This document shows, piece after piece, positions 1 through 31,439 of a DNA stretch of 64,000 bases. The notes beneath the pieces are model-generated. The model made no database searches. It was given only the letters and a program-made list of their open reading frames with translations, and had not been told where the DNA came from. Positions within the stretch are counted from its first letter, which is position 1; each line of letters begins with the position of its first letter. Origin of the DNA: Anaeramoeba ignava BMAN (lineage: Eukaryota; Protista; Anaeramoebae); the NCBI GenBank assembly GCA_028826165.1, contig JAPDFW010000079.1:248001-312000 (forward strand), read 5' to 3'. A program made the position numbers and the translations under genes.

Positions 1-3000
1 TGCTGGAGTAGTTGGAAATAAAGGAGCATGTGGTGTTGCATTCCAACTTCATGACTCTTCATTCTGTTTTGTTGGTTCACATCTTGCTGCACGTGAAGAA
101 CGTATTGCAATTCGTGCTGAAAATTATAGAGATATTATTGGTGGATTGCATTTTGGAATACCTGGTGTTGATATTACAGAACAATTCCAATATTTATTTT
201 GGTTTGGTGATTTGAATTATCGTTGTGAATATCCTTTTGATGTTGGTGTTGAATTGGGTATGAAAAAAGATTATCAAAAACTTTTGGAAAAAGACCAATT
301 AAAAAGGGAAATGAGTCAAGGAAAAGTTTTCCAAGGTTTTTCAGAAGGAAAAATTGATTTTCCTCCTTCTTATCGTTATACAAGAGGAGAAGTTAATATT
401 TTTAGTGATCAAGTATATTTGAAAATACATTTAAATAATATAAATAATATAAATATTATAAATAATATAAATAATATAAATAATATAAATATTATAAATA
501 ATATAAATATTATAAATAATATAAATATTATAAATAATATAAATATTATAAATAATATAAATATTATAAATAATATAAATATTATAAATAATATAAATAA
601 TATAAATAATATAAATATTATAAATAATATAAATAATATAAATAATATAAATAATATAAATAATATAAATAATATAAATAATATAAATAATATAAATAAT
701 ATAAAATAATATAAAATAATATAAATAATATAAATAATATAAATAATATAAATAATATTATAAATATAAATATTATAAATAATATAAATAATATAAAATA
801 ATATAAATAATATAAATAATATAAATAATATAAATAATATAAATAATATAAATAATATAAATAATATAAATAATATAAATAATATAAATAATATAAATAA
901 TATAAATAATATAAATATTATAAATAATATAAATATTATAAATAATATAAATAATATAAATAATATAAATATTATAAATAATATAAATAATATAAATATT
1001 ATAAATAATATAAATATTATAAATATGAGTGATTTGAGGCTGATGTGAAAAATTTTTTTTTGTTTATTTTTTTTCCCTTTTTTAATTAAAATTGAACAAG
1101 AAATCTCGATAAAAGCCTCAAATTTTGGTGCTTCCTGAGGCACGATAAAGGTTTATTTCTTTGAGAATTAGAAAAATTGAATCAAAAAAATCAATCAAAA
1201 AAAATCAATCAAAAATCAATCAAAAAAAAAGAAAAATGAATTAGATTCTTGTTAAAGAAAAAAGGAATAGAAAGAGTGATTATTTTTTCTTAATCTTCTC
1301 TTGTAAAAATCATCATTGTAAAAGTATCTTTTGTTCTAAAAGGATTCACGGGAAATATATGAGCATCACTTATTCCAAAAAAATTTGAACTAGTTTCGGT
1401 TTCTAAGATTTCAGTCCAATAATGACCTTCATTGGCATTTCCAATATGGTGTATTGATCCAAGCAATTTCATTTCAGTTTCTTGATTAGGACAACTCTGA
1501 AACATGAAAGATTTGACATTGATCTTTTCTTCACATTGAATTTTGGTTCCAATTCTTGTTGTAGATTGAGTCAAGGAATCATAATAAGTTCTCTTGAAAA
1601 AAATAACCAAATATTTAGGAATAGTCAAAAGAGACAATTTAATGGAGCTTTCTACTTTTTGGTCACAATTTTCACAGTGATAATGTTGAGAGAAATCTAA
1701 ATCCTTTTCAGAGAAATAATTATCGAGCATTGAAGAAATGCTAATTTCTCCGTTCAAAATTGGAAAGCTAATCACAAGACTTGTTTCTTGAGGAAAGGAG
1801 TAAGTAAATCTTTTACATTTCTTACATGTCACTTTTTGCACAATACGAATGCGAAAATCATTTATTATAGCTCGATTGTGAATATCAAATTCTTGATAAA
1901 GAAGATCATATGGAACATTGAAATCTGAAATATTCTCATTTGATATTAAATCCATCAAGGAAACAAAAAATTCATGTATATCTTGTTCATTAGTGTTGGA
2001 AAATTGAGTCACATGTTCTCCTATTACCTTTCTTAGTGGAGTTATATTAATCGATTCTTCTGAAGATTGTAAAATATCGCTCAAAGTTTCAGAAATATCA
2101 CCTAAACCTAATAGTTCAATTACAGAAGTTCTTAAAAGCACTTGAATGATGGAAGCAATATAACATGAATTGTGTGAATTTGGAATCTTTCTTAAATTCT
2201 AATCAAAAATTAAAATGAGAAAATCAAAAAGAAAAAAATAATAAAAGAAGAATTTTCTTACTCCTGTTTTGCAAATGGATATTGATGATGTAAAATTCTT
2301 TTGTTTTGGGAGATTATCTTGAAATTTTGAAATGCGCAAATTTTTGATTTCTTCTTTTTCTTCAAATTCAATTTTTCTCTTGATTTGTTGATGTTTTCTG
2401 GAAGAACTTCGTAGATTTCCATTCATATGATTCATTTCTTTCATCTTCTTTTCTCTTTGCGAATGAAATTTTTGTGTTTCATTTGGAATCACCTTTTCAT
2501 TTTTGGAATTTGTCATTTGAGTATTAAAGAAAGGAATAGAATAATTCTCCTGAATTAATGCTGAATTTTGTTTAATTCCAAATTCTTTCTCTTGGAAAAT
2601 TTGTTCAATTATAGGTATTCTTCTTTTTCGAAAATTGGTGTTTGGCATTCTTGCAGTTTTCAAGTTTCCTTTTAAGAAAATAAAAATGTGTGATTTTTTA
2701 ATTTTTGCAATTGGATTCTTGTAAAGAAATTTGAGTGCTCTATTCACATTTAAAAATAATTGGTGTTGTGTTACTAAGTTGAGATAAATAATCAAAAAGT
2801 GAATTAATAGTTGTAATATCCCCAAAATTTGCCTTATTCCTTGATATGTTACCAAAATGACGATCAGACATATGTTTAGCATGATTTTTAAGAAAGAAAA
2901 TTACCTTAATATCTAAAAATTGCGAACTAAAAGCATCAAAAATCATCCCCAGAACAAAGTTATTTTTAATGTGTCCTCCATTATCAGAAAAAATCCTTAG

Positions 3001-6000
3001 TTTTGATATGTTTAATAGATTTCTTTTATGTTGCCATTCATGGAATTTATATCGAAAATCTTGAAAACTTTGAAGAACAAATTGGGAATCCTATAAGAGA
3101 AATAGAAAATTAATAGAATCAAAAAGGAATTCAATTTTTAAACTTACTTTAGTTTGATCCTCTGAAATATAATCGAAATAGAACAACTGTTTTTCAAACT
3201 GAATAGTAATATTGAAGATCACCCATGATTTTTTATGATAGAATTCTTGTGTTTCCCAATTATCTCGATACTCTTGAAAATTGACTGCAAAGTCCAAGAA
3301 TAAAATAATTTGATCAAGAAGTTGAATTTCCGATTTGTATAAATTTCTCATTTCAAGAACTTTTCTTTGGTGATTCTGCCTTTTTTTCATGATTGGATTA
3401 GAACATTTTGGACACTGGAAAAAAAAAGCTGTTGCAGAATGAATTGAAAAATACTTTTGAAGAAGTGAGCAGAAAGTCCCATATTTAAGATCATTTTCTT
3501 TATCCTGTATTTGATTAAAAAGTCTTTTCTTTGTCAAACTTGTGCGGAAAACAGGTATATCTTTTCTGCTGTAAAAATCAATCGTTGTAAATGTTTCTAA
3601 ATTATCTAAAATTCGAAGGATATTTTTTTCATGATTTGTGAAAACCCATTCTTTTGATTTTGTTTGAGATTTTAGGTAAAATGGAATCTTAAAACGATGA
3701 TGTTCACAATTTAAATGTCTCTTTAGCTTCCATGAATTTAAATTTTTCAATTCCTTATCACAAGAAGAACAAAAAACTTTTTGTGTATCTAAATCATATG
3801 AAAGAAATGGATCCTGATCGATCATTTTTTGAGTATTCATTGGCACTTTCTTTCCACTTTTTGAAATAGAGATTTGAACATTCAAAATAGGAATTTCCTC
3901 TGAAGTTATTAGAAGAACTTGTTCTTTAACACAATTTAGGAAGATTACAAGTTGTGAATTGTTTGAAATACAAACATTTTTATCTTGAAAGAGATAGGTG
4001 AATGCTTGAATCTTTTGTCGAATGTTGAAGTTATCTTTCACATCTTTAATTAAGGTTTTAAAGTTTAGGATCTTTTCAGCATCAAACACACAAAAATTTC
4101 CTTGAAAACGAATAAAAAAAAGCTTCATTTAAAAGAAAAAATGAATTGAGATTTTATCAAAAAATTCCTTTTGAAATCCTCAAAAAAGTGGACATTGATT
4201 TAATTAAAAAAAAGAAAGAAAAGGAAAAAAATCTTCTTGATCTTATTTCAAAAAAAAAAGAAAAAAACTAAAGAAAAAATTGATTCTTCAATCAAAATAC
4301 AAATGTCTAATATGTAAAGATATTTTGTAATTAAATTATCGATAAAAACAAATTGAAAGGGAGAAGAAAAGCAAAATGAAAAATCTGATCTTTTTGATTT
4401 TGATTGATTAAAATATGATTCAAAAAAAGTTATTTTAAAAAAGAAGTCTAAAATTTCTCTTTTATTTTTTTAAGAGATTTAAAAAAGAAGACATATATGA
4501 AATTTAAATTCCTTTTTTAAAAAAATTCCTTTATTAATAAAATCAAAAGTAAATAAATTTGATGAGAATTTTTTGGAACAATATAAAAAAAATCACTCAA
4601 TAAATTGATTATTTGATATTTTAATTTTGAGGCTCAAGAGGCTTTTTTTTTTATTGATTTTTTTTGCAACAGAATCACTCATATTATAAATAATATAAAT
4701 ATTATAAATAATATAAATATTATAAATAATATAAATATTATAAATAATATAAATATTATAAATAATATAAATATTATAAATAATATAAATAATATAAATA
4801 ATATAAATAATATAAATAATATAAATAATATAAATAATATAAATAATATAAATAATATAAATAATATATAAATAATATAAAAATATAAATAATATAAAAT
4901 AATATAAATAATATAAAATTATAAAAATATAAATAATATAAAATAATATAAAATAATATAAATAATATAAAATAATATAAATATTATAAATAATATAAAT
5001 ATTATAAAAATACATAAAAATATTATAAATAATATAAATATTATAAATAATATAAATATTATAAAATAATATAAATATTATAAATAAATAAAAAATATTA
5101 TAAATATTATAAATAATATAAATATTATAAATAATATAAATAATATAAATAATATAAATAATATAAATAATATAAATAATATAAAATTAAATAATATAAA
5201 TAATATAAATAATATAAAATAATATAAAAATAAAACATTATAAATAATATAAAATAATATAAAATATTATAAATAATATAAACAAATATAAATATAAAAA
5301 TATAAATAAATATTAAAATATAATATAAATAAACAATATAAATAATATAAATATATAAATAATATAAAACAACATAAATAAATATAAATATTATAAATAA
5401 TATAAATATTATAAATAATATTATAAATAATATAAATATTATAAATAATATAAATATTATAAATAATATAAATAATATAAATAATATAAATAATATAAAT
5501 AATATAAATAATATAAATAATATAAATAATATAAATAATATAAACAATATAAATATTATAAAATAATATAAATATTATAAATAATATAAATAATATAAAT
5601 AATATAAATATTATAAATATTATAAAAATAATATAAATACATATAAAAATAAAATATAAATAATATAAATAAATATAAATATTACAAAAAATAATATAAA
5701 TAATATAAATAATATAAATAATATAAATAATATAAATAATATAAATATTATAAATATTATAAATAATATAAATAATATAAATAATATAAATATTATAAAT
5801 AATATAAATGTTATAAACAATATAAATAATATATAAATAATATATAAAATATTATAAATAAATAATATAAATAATATAAATATTATAAATATTATAAATA
5901 ATATAAATAATATAAATATTATAAATAATATAAATATTATAAATAATATAAATAATATAAATAATATAAATATTATAAATAATATAAATATTATAAATAA

Positions 6001-6812
6001 TATAAATATTATAAATAATATAAATATTATAAATAATATAAATATTATAAATATTATAAATAATATAAATAATATAAATATTATAAATAATATAAATATT
6101 ATAAATATTATAAATATTATAAATAATTAGAAAAGAAGAGCACCTTCTTATTGTGATAGAATTCTTTGGAGATGCCTTCCTAATTTTGATGTTGAACAAC
6201 TTTCTTATCAACCTCATTTATCTTTTACAACAAGTGATCATAAACCAGTTTCTTCAACATTTACTTTAGAAATACCTCCTTTATTAACTCATGATTCTAT
6301 TGATAAAAATGCATTTTGTGTTATTAATTTTTCTGTTTTATTTGGAAAAAATTTTAGAACTTTAAAATCTTGTTTAGATGAAAAAGAAAAAGAGAAACAA
6401 AAATCAATTAGAATTGATTCACAAATTACTTTTGAAGCTCCTTTTCTTGATTCAGATTCAACAACAGAATTAGTTTTAAATAATCCAAATCCTATTTTTA
6501 ATAAAATTCCAGCTTTATTTCCATTTATTACATCAAAAAATTATTTAGAAAATCATCATATAATTTTAATTGTAAAAGATAAAAGAGGACAAATAATTGG
6601 TAAATAATTTAATTTATTTTAAATTTATTTTAATTTATTTTATTTAAATTTATTTTAATTTAAAAGGTCAAGCTCCTGTTTCTTTAAAAGGTTCTTGTGA
6701 TAAAAATCCAATTCAATTTTTAGCAATTATAAGAAAAAAAGGTTTTTTACTTGGTGAAATTTCTGGTTCAGTTCATATTACTTGGCCTTCTTTAAATTTA
6801 ATTCGATTTTAA
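1..6812 (+). CDS. Inositol polyphosphate 5-phosphatase with C-terminal C2-like domain (SHIP-like architecture); 5'-partial; exons <1-412, 6131-6599, 6667-6812
   Basis: Exon 1 reads GNKGACGV..SHLAA..FWFGDLNYR..DQL..FPPSYRY. After the GT(413)..AG(6130) intron the frame resumes KRRAPSYCDRILW..TSDHKPV, the canonical 5-phosphatase motifs. A second intron 6600-6666 keeps frame to TAA at 6810-6812. Confidence 0.92.
430..1026 (+). repeat. Intronic 9-mer satellite (ATAAATAAT/ATAAATATT)n, left of transposon
   Basis: Tandem array seen directly inside the 413-6130 intron. Confidence 0.95.
1027..4680 (-). mobile_element. Sola-superfamily-like DNA transposon, 3654 bp, 8-bp TIR GAGTGATT/AATCACTC, 4-bp TSD ATAT
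   Basis: Complex sequence interrupts a pure satellite. The ends GAGTGATT (1027) and AATCACTC (4673-4680) are flanked by ATAT on both sides, and removing the element plus one ATAT restores the repeat AAATATTATAAA. It encodes a DDD transposase. GAG..CTC termini with a 4-bp TSD match Sola2/Sola3. Confidence 0.85.
1290..4128 (-). CDS. Transposase-USP fusion: PB1-like domain, C2H2 zinc finger, Sola-type DDD core, linker, C19 ubiquitin-specific protease; exons 4128-3148, 3090-2262 (one frameshift ~2752-2756), 2198-1290
   Basis: Phase-0 GT-AG introns 3091-3147 and 2199-2261 join the ORFs. Transposase motifs: LFLDFAVN, IFSDNGGHIKN, FFLKNHAKHMSDRHFG. USP motifs: Cys box IPNSHNSCYIASIIQVL, EQDIHEFF, His box HHIGNANEGHYW, ISDAH. 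Confidence 0.8.
4681..6127 (+). repeat. Intronic 9-mer satellite (ATAAATAAT/ATAAATATT)n, right of transposon
   Basis: Same unit as 430-1026, continuing to the AG acceptor at 6129-6130. Confidence 0.95.
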
Positions 6813-7033
6813 ATTAAAAAAACAAATTAAAAAATAAAAACTTTTTTTTTTAATTATAATTTTGTAATTAAAAAAATTAAAAAATTAAAAAATTAAAAAT
6901 TAAATTTGTTTTTCTTTTTATTTCAAAATTAAAAAAATGAAAAAAAAGTGGAACAAAAAAAAATTTTTTGAATTAAAAAATTAAAAAAAATAAATTTGAA
7001 TTTGAATTTGAATTTGAATTTGAATTGTTTTAT

Positions 7034-7501
7034 TTATTTAACTGCATTTGAATATCTTGTAACAGCTTTTGTTCCTTCTGAAACTGCATGTCTTGCTAAT
7101 TCACCAGGTAATAATAATCTAGCAGCACCTTGAATATCTCTACTTGTAATTGTTCCTTTTCCTCCTAATCTTGATAATTCAGCTGCTTCTAATGCAAATC
7201 TATCAAAACAATCACTAACAAATGAATTCATAATAATCATTGCTTTATTTGAAATTCCAACATCTGGATGAACTTGTTTTAATACTCGATAAATATATGA
7301 TGAATATGTTTCAACTCTTTTTTTTTGTTGTTTTGTTTCTTCTTCTCCTTCTTTCTTTTCTTTTTTTGGTTTTCCTTTTCCTTTTCCTTTTGTTGTTCTT
7401 CTTCCTTTTCCTTTTCCTTTTCCTTTTTTTGTTGTTTCTTTTGGTTGTTCTTTTTCTGAATCAGTTGTAATTTTTTCTTCTTTTTTTTCTGTTTCTGACA
7501 T
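7034..7501 (-). CDS. H2B: Histone H2B with extended acidic/basic N-terminal tail
   Basis: [45 protein letters not shown] histone-fold signature. Confidence 0.97.
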
Positions 7502-7654
7502 AATTAATTTAATTTAATAAAAAATAAAAAATAAAAAATGAAAAAATGAAAAAAAAAAAATATTTTTTATTTAAATAAAATTAATCAAATATTATCCAAT
7601 AATTTTTGATTTTTTCTCAAAATTTATTGGATAATATTGTTTCGAAAATTTTTT

Positions 7655-8830
7655 AAAAGAAATATTTTAATTAATAAATATCTACATTTCAAACATTAAA
7701 TTAATATTTTAATAATAAAAATATTAATAAAATTATATTTTAAAACAAATTATAAATAAATAATAAATAATTTATTAATTAAATATTGAAATAAATTTAT
7801 TAAAATATTTTAATTAATTAATATCTATAAAATTAATTAATAATAAATAATAAATTAATTTGAAAATGTTAATAAAATTATATTTTAAAAACAAATTATA
7901 AATAAATAATAAATAATTTATTAATTAATTAATGAAATAAATTTATTAAAATATTTTAATTAATAAATATCTATAAAATTAATTAATAATAAATAATATA
8001 TTAATTTGGAAATGTTAATAAAATTATATTTTAAAACAAATTATAAATAAATAATAAATAATTTATTAATTAAATATTAAAATAAATTTATTAAAATATT
8101 TTAATTAATAAATATCTATAAAATTAATTAATAATAAATAATAAATTAATTTTGAAAATATTAATAAAATTGTATTTTAAAATAAATTATAAATAAATAA
8201 TAAATAATTTATTAATTAAATATTAAAATAAATTTATTAAAATATTTTTAATTAATAAATATCTATAAAAATTAAATAATAATAAATAATATATTAATTT
8301 GAAAATATTAATAAAAATTATATTTTAAAATAAATTATAAATAAATAATAAATAATTTATTAATTAAATAATGAAATAAATTTATTAAAATATTTTAATT
8401 AATAAATATCTATATTTCAAACATTAAATTAATATTTTAATAATAAAATTATTAATAAAATTATATTTTAAAATAAATTATAAATAAATAATAAATAATT
8501 TCTTAATTAAATAATGAAATAAATTTATTAAAATATTTTAATTAATAAATATCTATAAAATTAATTAATAATAAATAATATATTAATTTGGAAATGTTAA
8601 TAAAATTATATTTTAAAACAAATTATAAATAAATAATAAATAATTTATTAATTAAATATTAAAATAAATTTATTAAAATATTTTAATTAATAAATATCTA
8701 TAAAATTAATTAATAATAAATAATAAATTAATTTGAAAATATTAATGAAATTGTATTTTTAAAATAAATTATAAATAAATAATAAATAATTTATTAATTA
8801 AATAATGAAATAAATTTATTAAAATATTTT
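7655..8830. repeat. ~145-bp AT-rich tandem satellite, ~8 copies
   Basis: The ATATCTA anchor recurs at ~7677, 7821, 7967, 8112, 8259, 8406, 8549 and 8694. Confidence 0.85.
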
Positions 8831-9620
8831 CATTAATTTATTTCAAAAATGGAATAAAGAATATTAAATAATTAAATTTAGAATTAATTCTATTTTATAT
8901 ATTTTATCAATATTTCTTTTATTTAAAATAATATAAAATAATTCCCAATAATTTAATAAATTTAATAAAATATTTTTATTAATTTATTTCAAAAATGGAA
9001 TAAGGAATATTAAATAATTAAATTTAAAATTAATTATATTTTATATATTTTATTAATATTTCTTTATTTAAATTAATATAAAATTATTATCAATAATTTA
9101 ATAAAATTGAAAAGAAAATTGAAATATTTTAATAAAGATAAATATTTAATTTTAATAAGAATTAATAATAATTTAATTTAGATTTATTTTATTTTTAATT
9201 TCATTTAATATTTTTATTTATTAAATTAATATTTTTAATTATTTATTATTTCAATTTTAATTATAATAAAATATATTAAAAAGTGGAAGAAATATTTTAA
9301 TAAAGATAAATATTTAATTTTAATAATAATTAATAATAATTTAATTTAGATTTATTTTATTTAAATTTAATATAATGTTTTTATTTATTATACTAATATT
9401 TTTGATTATTTATTATTCCAATTTTAATTATAATAAAATATATTAAAAAAAGTGGAATAAATATTTTAATAAATATATATATTTAATTTTAATAATATTT
9501 AATAATAATTTAATTTAGAAATGAATTTATTTTAAATTGAAATAATATTTTTAATTATTAAATTAATATTTTTGATTATTTATTAATCCAATTTTAATTA
9601 TAATAAAATATATTAAAAAT
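8820..9620. repeat. Two short tandem arrays of ~150-170-bp AT-rich units (2 and 3 copies)
   Basis: ATTTATTTCAAAAATGGAATAA occurs twice (~8837, ~8982); AATATTTTAATAAA..TTTAATTTAGA..ATTATAATAAAATATATTAAAA occurs three times (~9123, ~9291, ~9460). Confidence 0.7.
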
Positions 9621-10085
9621 AAAATTAAAAATTAAAAATTTTAAATAAATTGAATTTAACATGATTGAATAAGATAAACTTTCTAAAAAAATAATTTTAA
9701 TAATTATTCTATTTTTGATTTTGATTATAATTTATTAATATTTAAATATTAATTAATAATAAATTTTATTTGATTTTTATTTTAATATTTTAATTAATGA
9801 ATTTAAATTTAATTATTATTAATTTCTATTTTCAATTTTTATTTTTATTTATTATATTAAAAATATTCAATTTTTTAAAATTTATTATTTTTTTTTTTTG
9901 GATTATTTTTATTAATTAAATTTTTAATAAATATTTTAAATTAAAATTAAATTATTTAAAATTAAATTTGTTTCTTATTTATTATTTTAAAGAAATTAAT
10001 TTGATTAAAAGTAAATTAAAATTGAATTAAATTTTGAAATAAAAAATTAAAAAAAAGTCTGATTTTCTTATTATTAATTAATTTT

Positions 10086-11744
10086 TTAAATAAAATAAGT
10101 TTCAAGTTCATCAACAACCCATTTATCATAAGAACCAGCTAAATAACTTTGAGCTTCATTTGTATTATAAGTAATTCCATTAGGTAGATTATAACCCCAA
10201 CCAAAATCTGAATAACCAGGTTGTAAATCAGAATCTAACCAAAAATCATTTCCTTTACCAAAAAATGGACCACGATCTAAACTAGAATAAATTGCACATT
10301 GAGGTAGTTTAATTGTAAACTTTGCAGGTATTCTATCTCCTTTATCATTTCTTAATGAAAAAATAAATGCATTTGAATCATTAATGTTTCCTGTATTTCC
10401 ATTAAATCCAACTTGAGTAAAACCTCCAAAAATAAAATTATCTTTTGTTTTGATAATAACTAATGTTTTTCCTTTCCAATCAACTTTTGAATGCCAATTT
10501 TTAGAATTAAATCCATCTCTTTTTGCTGAAAATCCTTTTTTCATTTTAGAAAAAAAATCATTATCATTTATCCATTCTTGTAATTTCTTAACATATTCAA
10601 TATCTTTAATAATTTCTGAATCTGAAAATTGAGGAAAATTCTTTTTTAATTCTTGCATTTTCTTTTCATATTCATCAAAAGCAGGTTTCATTTTCTCAAC
10701 CTCTTTCTTCCATTTCTCTTCAATTTCTTTGTTTTTATCTTCAATTTCCTTCTTTTTCTTCTTATTTTCAGATTTCAGATTTTGATTTTCTGTTTCGAAT
10801 GATTTAATTTTTTTATCTTTTTCTTTAATTCTTTTATCTCTTCTTTGAATTTTCTTTTCATTTTCTTTAATTTTTGTTTGATTTTCTTGATCTTGAATTT
10901 GAAAAATAGTTCTTTCAAAATGAATTAAAAAAGAATTTGGAAGAAAAATATCAAATTGTTTTAATTTATCAAAATCTTGTTTTGAAATTGAATCTTTATC
11001 AAATAATGAAAAAAAAGAATGAAATAATCTTTTCTTTGCATTCATTTTGTGTTTATATTTCCTTAATTTTAATGATTTAATTCTTTTTTCAATCCAATTA
11101 TTTAAAAATTGAAAAAAATCAAATTGAAAAATTTCTTTTTTTTCTTGTTTAAATTGAATAAATTTGATAATTTCTTCTTTAGTTAAATTGAATAAATTCT
11201 CATTATTCTGAATTTGGGAAAAATTTTGATTTATTAATTCAAAACATTTTATTTCAATTTCATTTGAATTTAAATTTCGATTTTGGAATAAAAATTGGAA
11301 AAAATTTGAATAATTAATTGAATTTGAAATTTTTTTTTGAATAATTTCTTTCAATAAATTTAATTTAAAATAAATTGAAATTTCCAATAATTGAATAAGA
11401 TTTTCTTGATTCTCAAAAGAAATATTTCCATAATAAATATAACTTAAAATTGATTCCATTTCTTTTTTATTAAATTGATTTAAAGAAATAAAAAGAGATT
11501 CTTGCCTTAATGACTCATTAAAAAAAGGAGATCTTGAAGATAAAATTGATTTATGAACTTTAATTTCAAAAGGATTTAATTTATTCTCAACAAAAATTGA
11601 AAAATCTTTAAATGAATTTCCATTTAAAAGGTTTGAATAATCTTTAATTAAATTTTTTGTTACTTTTTTTTCTAAATTTTTCTTTTCATTTGCATTTTGA
11701 TTTCGATTTGCATTTTCAATTTGGTTATTATTATTATTATTCAT
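10086..11744 (-). CDS. BTB/BACK, coiled-coil and TLDc domain protein
   Basis: BTB: FKDFSIFVE..IKVHKSILSSRSPFF..YIYYG. TLDc: SAKRDGFNSKNWHSKVDWKGKTLVIIKTKDNFIFGGFT..FIFSL..GPFFG. Confidence 0.9.
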   Translation of the reverse strand: MNNNNNNQIENANRNQNANEKKNLEKKVTKNLIKDYSNLLNGNSFKDFSIFVENKLNPFEIKVHKSILSSRSPFFNESLRQESLFISLNQFNKKEMESILSYIYYGNISFENQENLIQLLEISIYFKLNLLKEIIQKKISNSINYSNFFQFLFQNRNLNSNEIEIKCFELINQNFSQIQNNENLFNLTKEEIIKFIQFKQEKKEIFQFDFFQFLNNWIEKRIKSLKLRKYKHKMNAKKRLFHSFFSLFDKDSISKQDFDKLKQFDIFLPNSFLIHFERTIFQIQDQENQTKIKENEKKIQRRDKRIKEKDKKIKSFETENQNLKSENKKKKKEIEDKNKEIEEKWKKEVEKMKPAFDEYEKKMQELKKNFPQFSDSEIIKDIEYVKKLQEWINDNDFFSKMKKGFSAKRDGFNSKNWHSKVDWKGKTLVIIKTKDNFIFGGFTQVGFNGNTGNINDSNAFIFSLRNDKGDRIPAKFTIKLPQCAIYSSLDRGPFFGKGNDFWLDSDLQPGYSDFGWGYNLPNGITYNTNEAQSYLAGSYDKWVVDELETYFI

Positions 11745-12149
11745 TTTGTTTTTTTGTTTTTGTTTTTTGTTTTTTTGTGTTTTTTGTTTTTAAAAAAAGG
11801 AAAAAATGAAAAAAAATTTAAAAAAAAAAATGAATAAAAAGTGAATTTTGAAAATAAATAAAAATATAAAAAATAAGAATAAATTTAAATTAATAATTAA
11901 TTTAATTTTCTTTTTAATTTATTATTTTAAATTAATTTATTAATAAATTATTATTATTTTTATTAATTTTTATTATTAAAAAAAAGGAAAAATTATTTTA
12001 ATTTAATTTTTAATTTAATTTTTTTTTGGAATTTAAAAATTATTAATAAATTTAAATTTTAAAACAAATTTCCAAATTAATATTAATTCAATTTAATTCA
12101 AAAAGATAAAATTTTAATTTCAAAAATCAATTTTTAAAATATTTTTAAA

Positions 12150-13850
12150 TAATAAAATATTTAAATCTAAAACATTAAATTATTATTTTAAGCATGAAAT
12201 TAAATATTAAATTATATTTTAAATTAATTTATAAATTAAATATTAAATTAAGCCTATTCTTATTTTTTATATTTATATGTTAAATAATTAAATAATAAAA
12301 TATTTAAATCTAAAACATTAAATTAATATTTTAATAATAAAATTAAATATTAAATTATATTTTTAAATTAATTTATAAATCAAATATTAAATTAAATCTA
12401 TTCTTATTTTTATATTTTTATGTTAAATATTTAAATAATAAAATATTTAAATCTAAAACATTAAATTATTATTTTTAAACATAAAATTAAATATTAAATT
12501 ATATTTTTAAATTAATTTATAAATTAAATATTAAATCTATTCTTATTTTTATATTTATATGTTAAATATTTAAATAATAAAAATATTTAAATCTAAAACA
12601 ATAAATTATTATTTTAAACATAGAATTAAATAATAAATTATATTTTTAAATTAATTTATAAATTAAATATTAAATTAAATATATTCTTATTTTTTATATT
12701 TATATGTTAAATATTTTAATAAGAAAATATTTAAATATAAAACAATAAATTATTATTTTAATAATAAAAATTAAATATTAAATTATATTTTTAGATTAAT
12801 TTATAAATTAAATATTAAATTAAATCTATTCTCATTTTCTGTATTTATATGTTAAATATTTAAATAATAAAATATTTAAATCTAAAAACAATAAATTATT
12901 ATTTTAATAATAAAATTAAATATTAAATTATATTTTTAGATTAATTTATAAATTAAATATTAAATTAAATCTATTCTCATTTTCTATATTTTTTATGTTA
13001 AATATTTAAAATAATAAAATATTTAAATCTAAAACATTAAATTATTATTTTAAACATGAAATTAAATATTAAATTATATTTTTAAATTAATTTATAAATT
13101 GAATATTAAATTAAATCTATTTTCATTTTTATATTTATTTGTTAAATATTTAAATAATAAAATATTTAAATCTAAAACATTAAATTATTATTTTAAACAT
13201 AGAATTAAATATTAAATTATATTTTCAAATTAATTTATAAATTAAATATTAAATTAAATCTATTCTCATTTTCTGTATTTATATGTTAAATATTTAAATA
13301 ATAAAATATTTAAATCTAAAACAATAAATTATTATTTTAATAATAAAATTAAATATTAAATTATATTTTTAGATTAATTTATAAATTAAATATTAAATTA
13401 AATCTATTTTATTTTTTATATTTTTATGTTAAATATTTAAATAATAAAATATTTAAATCTAAAACATTAAATTATTATTTTAATAATAAAATTAAATACT
13501 AAATTATATTTTTAAATTAATTTATAAATTAAATATTAAATTAAATCTATTCTTATTTTTTATATTTATATGTTAAATATTTTAATAATAAAATATTTAA
13601 ATCTAAAACAATAAATTATTATTTTAAACATAAAATTAAATATTAAATTATATTTTTAAATTAATTTATAAATTAAATATTAAATTAAATTTATTCTTAT
13701 TTTTTATATTTATATGTTAAATATTTTAATAAGAAAATATTTAAATCTAAAACATTAAATTATTATTTTAATAATAGAATTAAATATTAAATTATATTTT
13801 TAAATAAATTTATTAATTAAATATTAAATTAAATTTATTCTTATTTTTTA
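12150..13850. repeat. ~143-bp AT-rich tandem satellite, ~12 copies
   Basis: The AAATCTAAAAC anchor recurs at ~12166, 12309, 12452, 12592 ... 13746. Confidence 0.9.
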
Positions 13851-15608
13851 TTAATTTTGATTATTAAATTTATTAATTAATAAATCAAATAAATTTGGAT
13901 TTGTTTGATTTAATTGAAAATAATCAATTCCAATTTGAATTTCATCAATAATTTCTTGTGTAATTTCAATTTCATCTTTAATTTGATTTGAATAAATCCA
14001 ATATTCTAACATTTGAAATGATTTATTACTTAATTCACTATAATCTTTAACTTTATTAGAAGTATCTTCAGTTACAGATAAAAACATTCCTCGATATAAT
14101 TCACTTCTCATTATTAATATTAATTTAGGAAATTTATATTGTTTTTCTTTTCTTTCAATAATAAAATCTTTTTCATTTTCATTTAAATAAATTCTTTTCA
14201 TTGTTTCTTCAATCATTTCATTGGAATTTATAATTTCTTTAATTTCAGAATATAATATTGGATTTATTTTGGAATTATTTGAATAAATCATTTCAAATAT
14301 TTGATTTGATTCTTTAATTGATTTATTTGAAATAATTTCTTGAAGTTTTTCAATTTGATTTTGATTTTGATTTAATCTATATTTCAATATTAATTTATGA
14401 GCTTCAATTATTGAACCATTTTCGGTTTTAAATGAAATATCACAAAATTCTTTTCTTCTAAATAATTTTATCAAATCTTCTTCAAGATTGGAAAAAGAAA
14501 AAGGAGAATAATAAAGAAATGATCTGTAATATCCACAAGAAACATGATAATTGGAAATATTTTCATTAAATCTTAATTTAGGAAGTTCAATTTGAATTGG
14601 AATTGATTGATTTTTTGTATCTCCAGTTCCTAATTTACCATATAAATTTTCACCAAATCCTATTAATTTTGAATTGGAAGTTAAAATTAAATTATGTTTG
14701 TATGTAACAGAAAAATCAATAATATTATCATCATTTTCAAATAAAGATGATTTGATTTCAGTAAATTCATAAGTATCTTCATCTTTTCCAAGTCCATTAT
14801 AACTATATCTTCCACATGAATAAAGTTTTCTTTTTGGATTTTGATTTTGATTTTCATTTTCAACCAACATTATTGAATGAAAATTCCCAGATTGAATATC
14901 AATTATTTTACCTTTTGGAATATTTTGGATTTTGGTTAATTTTTTGATATAATCTTCTTTTCTTCCTAATCCAAGTTCACCGAAATAATTAAAACCACAT
15001 CAAAATAATTCTTGATTTGAATTTAAAAGAAAAACAGAATATGAACAATTTCCTGAAAATATTTTAGAAACATTTTTCATCATTAAAATTGGTTTTTCTG
15101 TTTTTGTAAGTGTTTCATAATCAAAACCAAGTTGACCTTCTTCATTTGAACCAATTCCATAAACATTTTGATTTGAAGTTAATAAGTAAATTGAACTGTA
15201 TCCAGAAACAATATCTTGAATTATTCTATCATTTGTATCTTCGATTAATGATGAAATATTGATAAATTCTTTTGGATTTTTTGGATTGATATTATTTCCT
15301 TTGGCAAATACATTTCCTTCTATTGTTAAAATAGCTTCATTTTCACCACCAGCAGTCACTTTTTGAATATTTTCAATTTGGATTTTTTCAGGATTTTGAT
15401 CTGAATCTCTTAAATATTCTATTGCTTTTCCATTTTCAAAAAGGAAAATTGTTGAAATATGACTTGATGAAATTTGTTTAATTTGTTTTTCATTTTCATT
15501 TTCATTTTCATTTTCAAATTTAAATTGAATTGGTTTAAATATTTTATTTGGTTCATTTTTTAAAAGTTTTGGTTGTAAATTCCAACCAAAAAATATAATT
15601 TCATTCAT
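13851..15608 (-). pseudogene. RCC1-repeat + BTB protein, copy 1, with in-frame TGA at 15000-15002
   Basis: The two ORFs are in the same frame (QELF*CGFNYFGELG), and the intact paralog 18312-20066 reads QELFVCG here. Confidence 0.75.
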
Positions 15609-15703
15609 TTTTGAAAAGAAAAAAATGAAAAATGAAAAAAATATTTTTTATTGTTTTATGATGAAAAAGAAAGAAAGAAAGAAAGAAAGAAAAAGGAATT
15701 TTA

Positions 15704-18072
15704 TTAATCGAAATAATCACCATCAATTTCATCAAAATATGGAGGTATTTTCTTTTTTCTTTTACGAACTAAAATGATGATTAAAATGATAGCAGTAATC
15801 ACCACAACTGGAACAACAACACCAACAACAATTTTAGTAGTTTTTGAATTGGATGATATTTTTTTTTGTGTTTCAAGTTGAATTGAAGAAATAGTTCCAC
15901 AATTATCATTTTCATCACAAGCGGAAACAGTGATTCGATATTCTTGATCAGGATATTGTGCTCTAAAATTGAACGAAGTGTAATTAATTGAAAATGTTGC
16001 GGAATCATTTTTGGAAATTGCTTTATAAGTGAAATTATAATAAGATGAATTGGTTGAATCACTTGGTTTTTTCCAATTACAAAAAATATCTTGAAGATCT
16101 GAAACTGAACAAGAAAAATTGATAACGGATGAAAAAAATGTTTCGATAGAAGATGAAATTGTTTGTCCTTCATCTTCCCCAAAGCATTCATCTTTTCGAC
16201 ATGCGTAAATGGATACCGAATAATTTGTAAGTGATTGTAAATTGTGGATTCGACATGATGTTGATGAATTTACGACCCAAATATTTGTTTTGATTGAATC
16301 ATTTGAGTTTTCCTTTTGATAAGAAAGAACATAGTGATCTAATTTTGGAGTTGAATTGATGATTGGAACATCTGGGAAAGTCCATGAGGTTTGAATTACT
16401 TCTCCCGAAATGGCTTGCAAATGGAAATTTTTGACAGAATCAATTCGTGTTGTTAAATTAACTTCTTTTGAAGCAAATCCACAAATTTGAGTTGTTTTAT
16501 TGCAAGCCCGAATTTGGATTGAATATTCAACATTTCCTGTTATATTTTCATAATTTGAAGAATTGAACATTTGGAATAATACATTTTCATCAAGAATCGG
16601 TGACTCAATTAATTGCCAATTTGGCGAAAGTGTGTAATTGATTTGGTATTCAATTTCATCCGAGCTTGGATTGACTTGATTCCAATAGCATTCAAATGAA
16701 CAAAATAATGAAGAGCAATTTAAAATATCAACTTGTGGAGGTTTAGGAACATATGAGAAAAAAAAAGCTTCTCCTTGGAAGCAATTCTCCCCAATTGTTG
16801 CAAAAGGAGCGCCAATAACAACATCATTTCCATCTGAAGAAATGGAAAGAGTTTGGCCAAAATGACCCCATCCAAGATCATTTCCAATTAAAATTTGTGA
16901 CTCAAGCCATTTCGTCGCATTGTTTTCAAATCCATACACTTTTCCCTGAAACCAATCATCCCCAACATTCGCAGTGGGAGAACCAATTAAAAGATATCCT
17001 GTGTTTTGTGAAATGGAAACATCGTATCCAAAATACCCGTTTGTTGTTCCATCACTTGCAAATAAAATTTGTGATTCAATCCAATTTGTTCCGTTGTTTT
17101 CAAAAATATACGCTTTTCCTTGGTAAGGATTTTCTCCAACGGAAGCATAAGGTGCTCCAATTACAACATATCCTTGATTTTCTGATGTGGATAAACTTAT
17201 TCCAAATTGATCATTATCTTTACCATCACTTCCATTTATCATTTGAAACACATCCCAATTTTTTCCGTTGAATTCATAAACATAAACTTTTCCTTGATTC
17301 GCGTTCTCTCCAATTTTTGCATAAGGAGAACCAATAAAAATATAAGTTCCATTTTGTGTAATTGAAATACTTGATCCAAAATTATCATTTTGATTTCCAT
17401 CATTTGCAATTAAAATTTGAAATAGATTCCAATTTGTTCCGTTGTTTTCAAAAATATAAACTTTTCCTTGAGCAGAATTATTTACAACGGTTGCGCTATA
17501 AGATGCAATCACAATATAAGTTCCATTTTGTGTAATTGAAATACTTGATCCAAAATTATCATTTTGATTTCCATCATTTGCAATTAAAATTTGAAACAGA
17601 TTCCAATTTTTCCGTTGAATTCATAAACATAAACTTTTCCTTGATTCGCGTTCTCTCCAATTTTTGCATAAGGAGAACCGATAAAAATATAAGTTCCATT
17701 TTGTGTAATTGAAATACTTGATCCAAAATTATCATTTTGATTTCCATCATTTGCAATTAAAATTTGAAATAGATTCCAATTTGTTCCGTTGAATTTGTAA
17801 ATATAAACTTTTCCTTGAAAAGAATTATTTCCAATTTTTGCAAAAGGAGAACCAATTACGAGATATTCTTTGTTTTCTGAAACACTTAATCCCCAACTAA
17901 ATTGATCAGTTGTATTTGTTTCATTTTCTTTTAATGTCTGTTTTATTACCCATCCTATTTCTTTTCCTTCTGTTTTTTTTTCATTTATTTTTGCTTCTTT
18001 TAAACTAAGAACCTCAAATATAAAAAACACAAGAAAAATATTTGAAAAGAACAAAACTTTTTTTGAGTTCAT
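15704..18072 (-). CDS. Type I membrane protein: signal peptide, FG-GAP beta-propeller, ~3 FN3 domains, TM helix, short tail (frameshift ~17606)
   Basis: Repeats of ANDG.ND.FG.S.SI....IG.P.A.....QGKVY; FN3-like W/Y patterns; TM IVVGVVVPVVVITAIILIIILV followed by RKRKKK. Confidence 0.85.
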
Positions 18073-18107
18073 TTTTAAAATGAAAAAAATGAAAAAATAA
18101 TTTTGGA

Positions 18108-18312
18108 ATTTTAATTTTAATTTTAATTTTAATTTTAATTTTAATTTTTAATTTTAATTTTAATTTTAATTTTAATTTTAATTTTAATTTTAATTTTAAT
18201 TTTAATTTTAATTTTAATTATAATTTTGGAATTTTAATTTTAATTTTAATTTTAATTTTAATTTTGATTTTAATTTTAATTTTAATTTTAATTTTAAATT
18301 TAATTTTAATTT
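18108..18312. repeat. (TTTTAA)n microsatellite
   Basis: Intergenic hexamer array seen directly. Confidence 0.95.
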
Positions 18313-20066
18313 TAATTTTTAAATTTTTTAATTAATAAATCAAATAAATTTGGATTTGTTTGATTTAATTGAAAATAATCAATTCCAATTTCAATTTCAT
18401 TAATTATTTCTTGTGTAATTTGAATTCCTTCTTTGATTTGATTTGAATAAATCCAATATTCAAATATTTGAAATGATTTATTACTTAATTCACTATAATC
18501 TCTAACTTTATTTGATTTATCTTCTGTTACAGATAAAAACATTCCTCGATATAATTCACTTCTCATTATTAATATTAATTTGGGAAATTTATATTTCTTT
18601 TCTTTTCTTTCAATTATAAAATCTTTTTCATTTTCATTTAAATAAATTCTTTTCATTGTTTCTTCAATTTTTTCATTTGAATTTATAATTTCTTTAATTT
18701 CGGAATATAATATTGGATTTATTATTCTGTTTGAATAAATCATTTCAAATATTTGATTTGATTCTTTAATTGATTTTTTTGAAATAATTTCTTGAAGTTT
18801 TTCAATTTGATTTTGATTTTGATTTAATCTATATTTCAATATTAATTTATGAGCTTCAATTATTGAACCATTTTCTGTTTTAAATGAAATATCACAAAAT
18901 TCTTTTCTTCTAAATAGTTTTATCAAATCTTCTTCAAGATTGGAAAAAGAAGGAGGAGAATAATAAAGGAATGAATTGTGGAATCCACAAGAAATATGAT
19001 AATTGAAAATATCTTCATTAAATCTTAATTTAGGAAGTTCAATTTGAATTGAAATTGAATGATCATTTGTATCTCCAGTTCCTAATTGACCATAATCATT
19101 ATTTCCAAATACTATTAATTTTGAATTGGATGTTAAAATCAAAGTATGATAACCTCCAACAGAAAAATCAAGAATATTATCATCATTTTCAAATAAAGAT
19201 AATTTGATTTCAGTAAATTCATAAGTATTTTCATATTCTTTGCCAAGTCCATTTAGTTCATAATATCCACATGAATAAAGTTTTCTTTTTGGATTTTGAT
19301 TTTCATTTTCAATCAACATTATTGAATGAAAATATCCACATTGAATATCAATTATTTTACCTTTTGGAATATTTTGTATTTTGGTTAATTTTTGGATTTT
19401 TAATTCTTTTCTTGATTCTTCTAATCCAAGTTGACCATATATATTATTTCCACATACAAATAATTCTTGATTTGAATTTAAAAGAAAAATATGATTTGAA
19501 GAATTTCCTGAAAATATTTTAGAAACATTTTTCATCATTAAAATTGGTTTTTCTGTTTCATCAAGTGTTTTAGAATCAAAACCAAGTTGGCCATATTCAT
19601 TTGAACCAATTCCATAAACATTTTGATTTGAAGTTAATAAGTAAATTGAATTGTAACCAGAAACAGTATCTTGAATTATTCTATCATTTGTATCTTCAAT
19701 TAATGATGAAATATTGATAAATTCTTTTCGGTTTTTTCTAATGATATCATTTCCTTTGGCAAATACATTTCCTTCTATTGTTAAAATAGCTTCATTTTCA
19801 CCACCAGTTACTTTTTGAATATTTTCAATTTGGATTTTTTCAGGATTTTGATTTGAATCTCTTAAATATTCTATTGCTTTTCCATTTTCAAAAAGGAAAA
19901 TTATTGCAAAAATATGTGATGAAATTTGTTTAATTTGTTTTTCATTTTCATTTTCATTTTCATTTTCATTTTCAAATTTAAATTGAATTGGTTTTTTTAT
20001 TGAATCTGGTTCATTTTTGAAAAGTTTTGGATTTTCATTTGAACCAAAAAATATAATTTCATTCAT
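18312..20066 (-). CDS. RCC1-repeat + BTB domain protein, copy 2 (intact, 584 aa)
   Basis: RCC1 repeats (GSNEYGQLG, CGNNIYGQLG, GGYHTLIL, GNNDYGQLG) followed by two BTB-like segments (FCDISF..EAHKLIL; LILIMRSELYRGMF..YWIYS). Confidence 0.9.
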   Translation of the reverse strand: MNEIIFFGSNENPKLFKNEPDSIKKPIQFKFENENENENENEKQIKQISSHIFAIIFLFENGKAIEYLRDSNQNPEKIQIENIQKVTGGENEAILTIEGNVFAKGNDIIRKNRKEFINISSLIEDTNDRIIQDTVSGYNSIYLLTSNQNVYGIGSNEYGQLGFDSKTLDETEKPILMMKNVSKIFSGNSSNHIFLLNSNQELFVCGNNIYGQLGLEESRKELKIQKLTKIQNIPKGKIIDIQCGYFHSIMLIENENQNPKRKLYSCGYYELNGLGKEYENTYEFTEIKLSLFENDDNILDFSVGGYHTLILTSNSKLIVFGNNDYGQLGTGDTNDHSISIQIELPKLRFNEDIFNYHISCGFHNSFLYYSPPSFSNLEEDLIKLFRRKEFCDISFKTENGSIIEAHKLILKYRLNQNQNQIEKLQEIISKKSIKESNQIFEMIYSNRIINPILYSEIKEIINSNEKIEETMKRIYLNENEKDFIIERKEKKYKFPKLILIMRSELYRGMFLSVTEDKSNKVRDYSELSNKSFQIFEYWIYSNQIKEGIQITQEIINEIEIGIDYFQLNQTNPNLFDLLIKKFKN

Positions 20067-27717: not shown

Positions 27718-30700
27718 TCATTTTTCTCTCTTCAAACAAACACTTTTTGTTGTTTCTTGATGATGAAATATTCCAATTAAGGTATGGGCTTTTTCATACA
27801 TTTGAGATGAATGAGAAACAACAATAAATTGACTTGAATTTTCATTTTGAGATATTTTAGAAATGAATTTCCCAACTCGATCAATAGTTGAAACATCCAA
27901 AGAAGAATCGAATTCATCCCAAACAAAAATAGGAGAAGAATATTTTTTCTGTAAACTTAAAGTCAATGCTAAAGTTGCAAGTGCTTTTTGTCCTCCTGAA
28001 AGATTTCTAAACATTTTCCATGTTGTATTATCGGGTTTTATATGAAAAGAAACTCCTTCTAAAAAAGTATTTGCTTGTATTTTTGAGTATTGAAGAAAGC
28101 AATCTCCTGATTTTGCATTAATTTCTCGATAAATTTTTGATAATTCTTCATTGATTTCCTTCATGGATGAATCAAAAAGTTCAAATCTATTTGCCTCTAA
28201 TTTATCTCTCAACTCCACATGCTTTTTCCATTCCATTTTCAATTTTCTTCTTTCGCTTTCTAGTTTTTTCTTCTCCTTCTGAAGAGAAAGATCTTTTTCC
28301 AAATTGTTAATTTCAATTCTTTTCTCTTTCTCTTCAAGTGATTTTTCAGTTTCTTCAATTTCAATTTTCACATTATTCAATGCCTTTTTAAATCTTGTTT
28401 TTTTTCTTCACCTCTTTCCCTTCTCTTCTCTTTTTCTTTTCCCATTTCTCCTTGATTAATTTCTTTCTCAATCCTCTCTAGTTCTTTTTCAACTTCTTTC
28501 ATTTCCTCTTCCATCTGTGTTTTGAGCATCCTTTTGTTTTCCATTTCATTTTCAATTTTTGCTTTGTGATTCCCCAAATCTTCTCTTTCTTTTCCTTTCT
28601 TTTCCCATTCTCTCTTCATTTCCCTAATTTCTTTCTCAATCCTCAACACAAATTCTTTCATATCTCTTAAATTCTTTTTTACCTCCTTTTCCTTATTCTT
28701 TAATTCATCAACTAATTCATCTATTTTCTTCTTTTCCTGTTTTTTTTGGTCAAGTTGTTCTTCCTTTTTGTTTTTCAAATTCTGTTTCATTTTCATTTCA
28801 GCTTTTAAGTTTAACAAAATTCCTTCTTTTTTGGATAATTTTTTTCTTTTCGAGTTCAATAGTTCTTTTGTATCCAGACAAGAAACTAATGCTTCCTCTA
28901 ATTTTTCTTTTCTTTCTTTGAGATTTTGATATTCAGTAAAATTGATTCCTTTTTCATCTTTTCCCAAAATTTCATATTTTTCATTCAAACAACTTGAATC
29001 CCTCTGTTTGATCTCCAAATCCAATTCATAATCCCTAATTTTTTGAGAAATTTTTGATAATTTCCCTTTCATGGTTCGTAAATCTGAAGAAATTTCCTTT
29101 ATTATGTTTTGAGTATTCTCTTTTTCTTCCTTCAATCCAAAAATTACTGATTGCAAATCCAAAATTGACTTTCTCATTTCTTGGATCTTGAATTCTATTT
29201 TTTCTGAACGTTCTAAAGGAATTAATGATTCGTTTGACTTGGTTCTTATCTGTTTATCTTTAATTTCAAATCTCTTCATTCGGTTATTTCTTTTCGAAAC
29301 GAGAAATCCTGTTGAAATCTCTCCATCTGAAAAATAAAGATCTCCATTTAATAACACAAAATTTTGGGAGTGATGAGATTGAGGAATATCTTTCCGATCT
29401 TCAACTATATTCCAATTTCTCAAAAATCGATAAAAAAAAGGAGCAAATTTATCTTCACATTCTATATAAGAAAACAAAGGAAATCCTTTTGATTTTAAGT
29501 TGTTTTGAATTGGAGGACTTTGAAGTTCATTTAGAATTTGGCATTTTACGATTCCAATTTTCTTTTTTCGAAACACAGAAATTACTTCACTTGCAGCTTC
29601 TCTTGACTCAACTAAAATTGTTGTGGATAAATTATTTTTCAAAACAGAATTAAGAGCAATCAAATACTTCTTGTTTATTCTCCCTAAATCCTTGAAAAAA
29701 CCATAGATTCCTGGATTACCTCTTTTTAGTTCGTTAATCATTTGTTCTGAAAGTGATTGTTGATGATTTTCTTTCAGTTCCATTTCTTTTCTTTTCTTTT
29801 TCTTTTCTAATTCTGAAAGATCTTCTTCCTTTTTCTGAATTTGTGATTCTAGTTGTGAATTCTTGTTTTCCATCTCTTCTCTCTCTTTTTCTTTTCTATT
29901 TGTTTCTTCCATTTTCTTTTTTTCGATTTCTTTTTGTTTTTGCATTAGTTTGCTTTCCTTTTTGGTCTCATTTTCTAAAATGGCTTTTTCTTCTTCCCAT
30001 TTCTGTTTCTTCTTCAAATGATTTTCTATTTTTTTCTCCATTTCTTGGAATCCATCACGGATATTTAGTTGAAATAATTCCAATTCGATTTGTTTTTTCT
30101 TTTCAATCTGATTTGTTTTGGTTTCTTTTTTCTTTTCTAAAGAGTCAATCTCCTCTTTCATTTTATTTATTCCAATTTTCAATTCTTTTTGTTTCTCTTG
30201 TAAATTTGTCATTTCCCCTTCTAGATCTTGAATATTTCCTTTCTTTTTTTTGATATCATTTTTCAATTTTGAATCTAAAGCTTCTTTCTTTCCAATTTCT
30301 GAAGATATTTGATTTACATTTTTCCAATTCTCAAAAATTTTGGATTCTTCTTCATTTTTGATATTTTCTTCTTCCTTCAATTTCTTCTTGATTTGTTTCA
30401 TCTCTTTGTCTTTATTTTGTGATTTTTTTTCAATTTTCCTTCTTTCTTCCTCAAGATTCTCATTTTCATTATTCAATCCTTGAATTATTGATAAATTTCT
30501 TTTCATTTGGATTGTGAAATAGTTTTTCCTCATAAAAAAAAGATTGGATCTTTCTTTTTGATAATTATTCCAGCTTTCCACTTTAGGTTGCAAAATGGCT
30601 CTATCTTTTTCAATTTGGTTGATTTTTGAAGATAATTCCAGAATATTTCGGTTAATTTCTTGGATTTCTTTATCCTTCTCTTCAATTTCATTTTTCAAAG

Positions 30701-31439
30701 ATTCTGTTCCAATTATCTTTTCTAAAAAAGTACACAACGATTTATTTCCTTTCTCAACAAAATTTGATGTTTTATGCTGGAATACAACAAATCTATCTAA
30801 AAACTTTGGATCAATCCCATATTTTGAATATTTTCTCATCAATTCTTTTTTTTTGATTTCTTTAAATGAAGAAGAATTCCTATTTTCTTTTTTTCTTTTT
30901 TTGCCTGTATTTTCGTTATTTGATTTTGAATTTAAATTTGATTTTTTTATGGAGAATTTGTTTTGGATTTGGATTTGATTTTTTTCAGAATGATTTTTGT
31001 TTTTTGATCTTTTTTTGAGAATAACTTGGAAAATTTTTCTTTTGAAGAAAATCTTCTTCATAATTTTGTTTTCGGAATTAATTAAAGCACAATTTAATAC
31101 GACAGAAGCTGAACATTTTTGATTATTTTTTGAAGAGATTATTTTCTCATTGATCAAATTTTCTTGATTTTTAGTTCTGATATCACTTGGATTGACACCA
31201 AGAACAAAACAAATTGCTATGTGGAATGTTAATTATTATATTTTTTTTAAAAAAATAAATTCAAATTTGATTTAAAAAAAGAAAGTAAAATTACCTTCAA
31301 GAATTGTGGATTTTCCACTTCCATTTGGTCCACAAATAACTGAAAAATTTGGATCAAAAAATTCTATAATTTCTTTTTGATAAAAAGATTTGAATCCTTT
31401 AATTTGAATTGATTGAATTTTGAGTTTTAAATTTTGCAT
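27718..31439 (-). CDS. Divergent SMC ATPase (SMC4/SMC1-like); exon 31439-31295, intron 31217-31294, frameshift ~28390
   Basis: An unlisted first exon gives IKGFKSF..CGPNGSGKSTILE|AICFVLG. Hinge PGIYGFFKDLG; signature LSGGQKAL; Walker B VWDEFDSSLD; QFIVVSH. Confidence 0.88.

Follow-up and report, generated by a model that had tools for sequence, protein, structure and literature searches.

What a ubiquitin-specific protease (USP) is doing on a DNA transposon is the question raised by a locus in Anaeramoeba ignava, a free-living anaerobic amoeba. Why unrelated DNA transposons have repeatedly captured ubiquitin and SUMO proteases is a question that dates back to about 2006-2010 and still awaits an experimental answer. 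The window considered here is a stretch of 64,000 nt from assembly GCA_028826165.1 (contig JAPDFW010000079.1, positions 248,001-312,000, forward strand), in which an initial sequence-only reading had proposed a Sola-like transposase fused to a USP. We are highly confident that positions 1027-4680 of the window represent a transposon with a USP fusion, and the motifs and fold of its transposase sharpen the earlier assignment to Sola2. None of the three outcomes that the initial reading had named as refutations was observed: the core is homologous to transposases, the frame of other copies continues beyond 2740, and additional copies as well as an empty site that can be reconstructed are present.

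The predicted protein of ~905 aa would comprise, in order, a beta-grasp-like domain, a BED finger, a zinc motif, a core with three catalytic aspartates (DDD), a linker, and the USP. Our tentative preference is that an active deubiquitinase tethered to the transposase may counter its ubiquitin-dependent removal. The tethered USP would act in cis, clearing the transposase, or proteins of the transposition complex, of ubiquitin chains, and host E3 ligases and the proteasome would thereby be kept from removing the complex before integration. The same kind of action has been proposed for the VTD deubiquitinases borne by Helitrons (PMC9741609).

Element ends, target site, and copies

The element and its boundaries were delimited as follows.

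1027-4680, coding on the minus strand: the element, 3654 bp, with GAG...CTC ends
4681-4684, no strand: ATAT target site duplication (TSD) on the 5′ side of the element, from end mapping and the empty-site test
4673-4680, minus strand: left terminus, the 8-bp inverted repeat GAGTGATT, with an identical start in copies L032-L035
4129-4672, minus strand: 5′ non-coding region, with ~138 bp of extra tandem duplication in four copies
1027-1034, plus strand: right terminus, the inverted repeat GAGTGATT, from end comparison
1023-1026, no strand: ATAT TSD on the 3′ side of the element, from end mapping and the empty-site test

The extent, the GAG..CTC ends, and the ATAT duplication that had been read from the window alone were all upheld. 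Specifically, GAGTGATT occurs at 4680 on the minus strand and at 1027 on the plus strand, forming a perfect inverted repeat of 8 bp with ATAT outside both ends, so that on the minus strand the element starts with GAGTGATTCTG at 4680 and ends with CAAATCACTC at 1027. The subterminal words GCCTC/GAGGC were located close to both ends.

A genome BLAST recovered six copies of this element (family 1) on six contigs, at 97-100% identity, five of which were complete while L031 was without the first ~53 bases. These copies had different flanks and were 14-25 substitutions apart over the coding region. A second family comprised five copies of 3.4-3.5 kb and a third a single copy of 4.6 kb, both starting with GAGAGA and having ATAT at both ends. 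Across the three families, which provided 11 complete insertions, ATAT was present at 23 of 23 mapped ends, including every intact end of family 1. The perfect terminal inverted repeat (TIR) spanned 8 bp in family 1 and 6 bp in families 2 and 3, and was imperfect beyond this, with shared subterminal words. Reported elements of the Sola superfamily have a 4-bp TSD and TIRs of at least 11 bp, the latter being a range and not a strict criterion (PMC10741241).

Reconstruction of empty sites resolved the nature of the ATAT. One family 2 copy (L040, from G000 contig C48) interrupts an ankyrin-repeat gene after codon 38, the gene lying at 2313-2426 and from 5941 onward. Removal of the element plus 4 nt restored a 723-aa ankyrin-repeat frame, while removal of 0, 2, or 8 nt instead gave 38-50 aa, and for the window copy a 4-nt removal gave the best restoration of the surrounding satellite period. 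Because this test favors 4 nt, the ATAT is a 4-bp duplication and not element sequence; its interpretation as part of the TIR or as a TA duplication was ruled out on the same grounds.

Searches with the combined TSD and terminus pattern returned 30 matches in the genome, versus one for the control. Since the pattern was so enriched, and the Pfam UCH domain was detected in the protease exon with an E-value of 2.9e-26, the association of USP and transposon is not attributable to chance. The possibility that the transposon had merely come to lie next to a USP gene of the host was rejected in addition, since both are enclosed by the same pair of ends in each of 11 complete insertions and share one frame. 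We conclude that this is a recently mobile, cut-and-paste DNA transposon that inserts into ATAT; transposases of this kind bind the ends of their element, cut it out, and insert it at a staggered 4-bp cut. Matches to the pattern on C37, C71, C82, C86, C107, and others had no full copy by BLAST and may be short non-autonomous derivatives or additional families.

The fused reading frame

The gene model of the window copy consists of three exons and one single-base interruption.

3148-4128, minus strand: exon 1, aa 1-327, with a BED-type zinc finger (aa ~112-143), CxxC...H (aa 239-253), and Asp279
3091-3147, minus strand: intron 1 (predicted), 57 nt, phase 0, GTAAGT..TAG, at a position common to four families
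2262-3090, minus strand: exon 2, aa 328-603, with Asp363, Asp403, a C-terminal beta region, and a basic low-complexity linker
2752-2756, minus strand: T5 run, in which one extra T shifts the frame to a TAG at 2742-2740
2199-2261, minus strand: intron 2 (predicted), 63 nt, phase 0, GTAAGA..TAG, with its junction as in the annotated protein P0010
1290-2198, minus strand: exon 3, aa 604-905, the USP, with Asn610, Cys615, a QD box, two CxxC pairs, His862, and Ser880-Asp881

Both phase-0 GT-AG introns in the sequence-only reading reappear in this model (3147-3091 and 2261-2199, as predictions), and the one-nucleotide correction it had made in the T5 run was vindicated by the other copies. The T5 (2756-2752) was present only in the window copy, with T4 in the five others, and L032 and L034 carry the 905-aa fusion frame uninterrupted, without any correction and reading past 2740. 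The published assembly is based on Nanopore reads with short-read polishing (PMC11550330), and homopolymer indels were found in three other copies too. Contigs from four public runs were all one base shorter at 2752; these contigs retain both introns, and the runs therefore represent DNA. Either an assembly error or a private mutation accounts for the extra T, the collapsed contigs being compatible with both, and a programmed frameshift at 2752 was rejected because the T5 is private to the window copy.

The data thus directly show the element, its TSD and copies, a single fused frame at the DNA level, the fold, and the conservation of active-site residues, whereas splicing, expression, enzyme activity, and substrate are inferred. 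Three annotated A. ignava proteins (KAJ5079105.1, KAJ5069443.1, and KAJ5069497.1) join both domains and bear only the hydrolase name; these entries, annotated as host 'ubiquitin carboxyl-terminal hydrolase', are transposases. Database searches were run exon by exon, or with returned proteins (P0001 and P0010), while translations, mapping, alignments, and trees were made from intact copies with their exons joined.

Intron 2 bears on a different explanation, in which the USP would act in trans as a general counter-defense against a ubiquitin-based anti-transposon or silencing pathway and splicing of this intron would switch between transposase-only and fused forms. In family 1 the intron is in frame and open to its terminal TAG, and in families 2 and 4 it contains a stop, such that in three families a transcript retaining it would encode a transposase lacking the USP. 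However, family 3 is without intron 2, making the fusion obligatory there. Genes for BTB adaptors are frequent, with four in the window, in keeping with such a counter-defense, but their abundance is a co-occurrence only and no such pathway has been described for Anaeramoeba, and we consider this explanation rather unlikely. A broader scenario, to which we also give little weight, holds that A. ignava has a ubiquitin-based post-translational defense against transposons (e.g., cullin-3/BTB recognition of transposases) and that independent protease fusions in several unrelated superfamilies arose as counter-defense, with the Sola2-USP fusion the cleanest case.

The transposase core and its assignment to Sola2

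The aspartates that had been proposed as catalytic were located as claimed: Asp279 (codon 3294-3292), Asp363 (2985), and Asp403 (2865), with 39 residues between the last two. In an alignment of 96 homologues, the three Asp and an HG motif were conserved at 90-100%, with the CxxC and His upstream. Family 1 has HA in the place of the HG that usually precedes the third Asp, a change that evidently was no bar to its recent spread. Pfam detected zf-BED in exon 1 (E 1.5e-4) and, weakly, DUF7869 in exon 2 (E 0.0016). A profile built from four contiguous A. ignava cores matched 2138 proteins at E ≤0.001, and exon 2 of the window family matched this profile with a probability of 98.8%.

The AlphaFold model of the family 3 core had a mean predicted local distance difference test (pLDDT) score of 89.6 and was closest to Metnase (Z 12.5) and Mos1 mariner (Z 12.0), with a root-mean-square deviation of ~3 Å (2.9 Å), followed by retroviral integrases, while Foldseek with the same model returned IstA and Mos1. 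The single-sequence fold of P0001 was of low confidence (pLDDT 33.6). Based on the family 3 model, the core is an RNase H-like DDD transposase fold. Membership in Tc1/mariner, which has a 2-bp TA TSD, was rejected, as removal of 2 nt restored neither the interrupted open reading frame (ORF) nor the satellite period, and only the fold is similar.

Sola2 elements are said to have been characterized by Bao et al. in 2009 by 5′-GRG termini and a D-x38-41-D spacing, which the GAG termini and D-x39-D spacing of the window element match. Sola3 elements target TTAA, and Sola3 was rejected since all targets here are ATAT. The core motifs agree with those of Sola2_DFa-2 and Sola2_PPa-1 (PMC3627910 supplement), as compared by eye and unscored. 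Collectively, these characters support filing the element as Sola2-type.

The first ~100 residues were conserved in five families and resemble beta-grasp folds, namely PB1, the TDP-43 N-terminus, SUMO-like proteins, and plant MuDR N-termini (template modeling scores 0.5-0.58); as a lead only, we regard aa 1-100 as a putative beta-grasp/PB1-like domain. The likeness to ubiquitin-like folds could be taken to mean that the USP processes its own polyprotein, for example by cleaving off this N-terminal domain. However, no conserved Gly-Gly follows the domain in the five families, it is also present in a USP-less family (L043), and plant MuDR transposases have domains like it, which together make self-processing highly improbable.

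Word-based searches found no relative of the core outside, a scan of metagenome contigs gave no match, and neither did an Atlas search with the whole protein. The closest environmental relatives were on contigs of 1-1.5 kb, lengths too small to show a USP.

The protease domain

Exon 3 scored 93 bits to Pfam UCH, against a cut-off of 23.9, bearing out the proposed domain, and the corresponding regions of families 2-4 scored 78-132 bits (the family 4 USP is broken and was read with an X at the break). The Cys, His, Asp, and two CxxC pairs of the sequence-only reading are present (Cys615 at 2165, His862 at 1424, Asp881 at 1367, and the CxxC pairs at 1826 and 1676), with one refinement, that in family 1 the canonical third position of the triad is Ser880, while Asp881 is the conserved 'fourth critical' Asp. 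Families 2-4 have Asp-Asp or Asn-Asp in place of Ser880-Asp881. A Ser at the third position is found in the active enzymes USP16, USP30, and USP45, and often it is the neighboring Asp that is required (PMC10867860). All four families retain the oxyanion Asn, Cys, QD, four zinc Cys, His, and the downstream Asp, and by its residues the USP appears catalytically intact.

Retention of these residues and of the frame over four families, despite changes at ~60-78% of positions, argues against the USP being a passenger that was captured but contributes nothing to transposition, perhaps inactive or only ubiquitin-binding. So does the excess of synonymous changes in family 1, where 10 of the changes in the USP exon were synonymous and 8 were non-synonymous (pN/pS 0.20, with P 0.001-0.02 according to transition bias), counts that are small and to which assembly errors add noise. 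Passenger status would fit with the uptake of 3′ cargo such as Fanzor by dictyostelid Sola2 elements (PMC3627910) and with the absence of the USP from most relatives; overall, it seems to us quite improbable.

The best PDB matches of exon 3 were USP21, USP8, and USP15, within a generic USP2/8/15/21 group, and its fold is of the plain zinc-fingers USP type common to USP21, USP8, and USP22/Ubp8. This fold, together with a DNA-binding fusion partner that would localize the USP to DNA, could indicate that the enzyme acts not on the transposase but on substrates of the host at the donor and target sites, either chromatin or repair factors (ubiquitinated H2A/H2B, PCNA, or break-signaling proteins), easing access or steering repair. 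A chromatin role has been suggested for the Ulp1 and OTU proteases on Ginger1 and Mutator (PMC2836005). However, no histone-targeting modules were seen, and histone deubiquitinases were not singled out among the matches; we consider this role less likely than the preferred one.

Some observations weigh against protection of the transposase by an active USP. The Cys box of family 1 is divergent (P-N-S-H-N-S-C) and its scores are below those of host USPs; the family 2 USP has a pN/pS of 0.50, which is not significantly below neutral; and a USP is lacking from ~77 further Sola2-like proteins, among them those of other A. ignava families, and is therefore not required by this type of transposase. 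Word-based searches with the family 1 USP found no outside relative, and those with the family 3 USP found three distant USPs only.

Distribution and history of the fusion

Core and USP were co-oriented in family 1, family 2 (C48, C90, C93, C96, and C105), family 3 (C40), and family 4 (C26), and remnants of both were found on C73 and C67. The fusion is present in at least four diverged families, with a fifth represented by a remnant. Between families, identity was 35-47% in the core and 22-41% in the USP. Intron 2 immediately precedes the Cys box in families 1, 2, and 4 and is absent from family 3, in which the second and third Asp, the linker, and the USP form one frame of 570 codons in a single exon. 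The 5′ region of family 3 (L041 1033-2430) is 1.4 kb, far longer than in families 1 and 2, and has no ORF of more than 100 codons.

In a FastTree reconstruction of transposase cores, the USP-bearing sequences formed one clade with support of 99, which included P0021 from the C67 remnant family of A. ignava. The USPs of the four families also grouped together, with support of 97, in a tree with a poor outgroup. The simplest reading, though not proven, would be a single capture of the USP that predates the divergence of at least four or five families. A UCH domain was present in 3 of 80 long homologues, all from A. ignava, and other A. ignava families (C142, C51, and C64) were without it.

Several USP-free relatives were observed. 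The C142 representative (L043, 3299-6898, minus strand) is an intronless frame of 1200 codons that encodes a related Sola2-like core together with long tracts rich in N/Q and carries a CCHC knuckle at the C-terminus; its ends were not found, and the gene is possibly domesticated. L049 and L050 (C51 and C64) belong to a second USP-free Sola2-like lineage with a helix-turn-helix region, for which the closest sequence is an A. flamelloides protein, and L049 lies back to back with a Mutator-like (MULE) transposase. In A. flamelloides itself (L052), a Sola2-like transposase gene (5838-7963) lies between inverted repeats of ~28 bp, with a separate, convergent UCH gene (8876-10042) 0.9 kb beyond the right repeat that falls outside the A. 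ignava transposon USP group. An inverted pair resembling a miniature inverted-repeat transposable element is also present there (~4524-4610/4840-4910).

Relation to known transposons

The nearest described elements are the dictyostelid Sola2 transposons of Dictyostelium fasciculatum (DFa-1/2/3) and Polysphondylium pallidum (PPa-1/4/5; Bao and Jurka 2013, PMC3627910). These share the CxxC...H before the core, the motifs xxDF..EN..FY, FFWSDG.xHFK, and YHGKS.xDxHF, an AT-rich 4-bp TSD that includes ATAT, short TIRs, introns, and 3′ cargo, and DFa-2 likewise starts with GAG. In contrast, the dictyostelid elements carry Fanzor1 in a gene of its own, whereas the cargo in A. ignava is a USP in the transposase frame; their TIRs are 12-22 bp, versus 6-8 bp perfect in A. 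ignava, where the target is strictly ATAT; and the A. ignava element has a BED finger and a beta-grasp-like domain ahead of the core. The A. ignava element extends the Sola2 group to metamonads, with a strict ATAT target.

The sequence-only reading knew of no fusion between a C19 protease and a Sola transposase, and the pairing with Sola was indeed not found in the literature searched, with Repbase Reports and most subscription papers outside it. However, C19 on a DDE transposase has a precedent in Trichomonas vaginalis XP_001314237.1 (PMC2836005), which also combines C19 and a DDE-type transposase in one protein, in a related metamonad lineage. That transposase belongs to transposase_11/PF01609, is IS4/IS5-like and not Sola, and was not presented in that paper as an element with several families and defined ends. 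Ginger1 and Mutator (PMC2836005) similarly have introns and a C-terminal cysteine deconjugase on a cut-and-paste transposase, but represent other transposase superfamilies and carry Ulp1 (C48 peptidase) or OTU. Deubiquitinases of the UCH, OTU, or VTD type are borne by Helitrons and Helentrons as well (PMC11417382, PMC9741609), where Pfam UCH is stably kept in HLE2 subgroups (PMC11417382) and VTD is active on K48 chains (PMC9741609); unlike the A. ignava element, these are rolling-circle transposons with the UCH in an ORF separate from RepHel. USP-type proteases on transposons are thus already known, and the novelty is limited to the pairing with Sola.

The element offers a compact test system, at 3.7 kb with one gene, two apparently intact copies, a well-understood enzyme class for which standard assays exist, and natural relatives that lack the USP. 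Because it is compact and assayable and such relatives exist, the question of protease capture is directly testable here with one point mutation.

Genomic surroundings

The element lies antisense within a host gene.

413-6130, plus strand: 5.7-kb intron of an inositol polyphosphate 5-phosphatase gene, A/T satellite, with the element antisense inside

The flanking exons encode consecutive parts of PF22669 (positions 110-239 and 244-287) that join in frame. The intron consists nearly entirely of a 9/18-bp A/T satellite, and similar pure A/T tracts are present at ~44-48 kb and ~58-62 kb. A gene for a histone H2B-like protein that is extended at its N-terminus by a long acidic/basic stretch (7034-7501, minus strand) is located 2.4 kb from the element. 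The BTB proteins, within 10086-20066 and 47914-50118, have TLDc, RCC1 (two), and Kelch domains. Genes for a BK-type channel, BEACH, DEPDC5/Iml1, and ESF1 in the window are split across adjacent frames. Finally, two identical units of a direct repeat, each at least 40 bp long and located at 27608 and 31642, flank an SMC-hinge gene (28377-31157).

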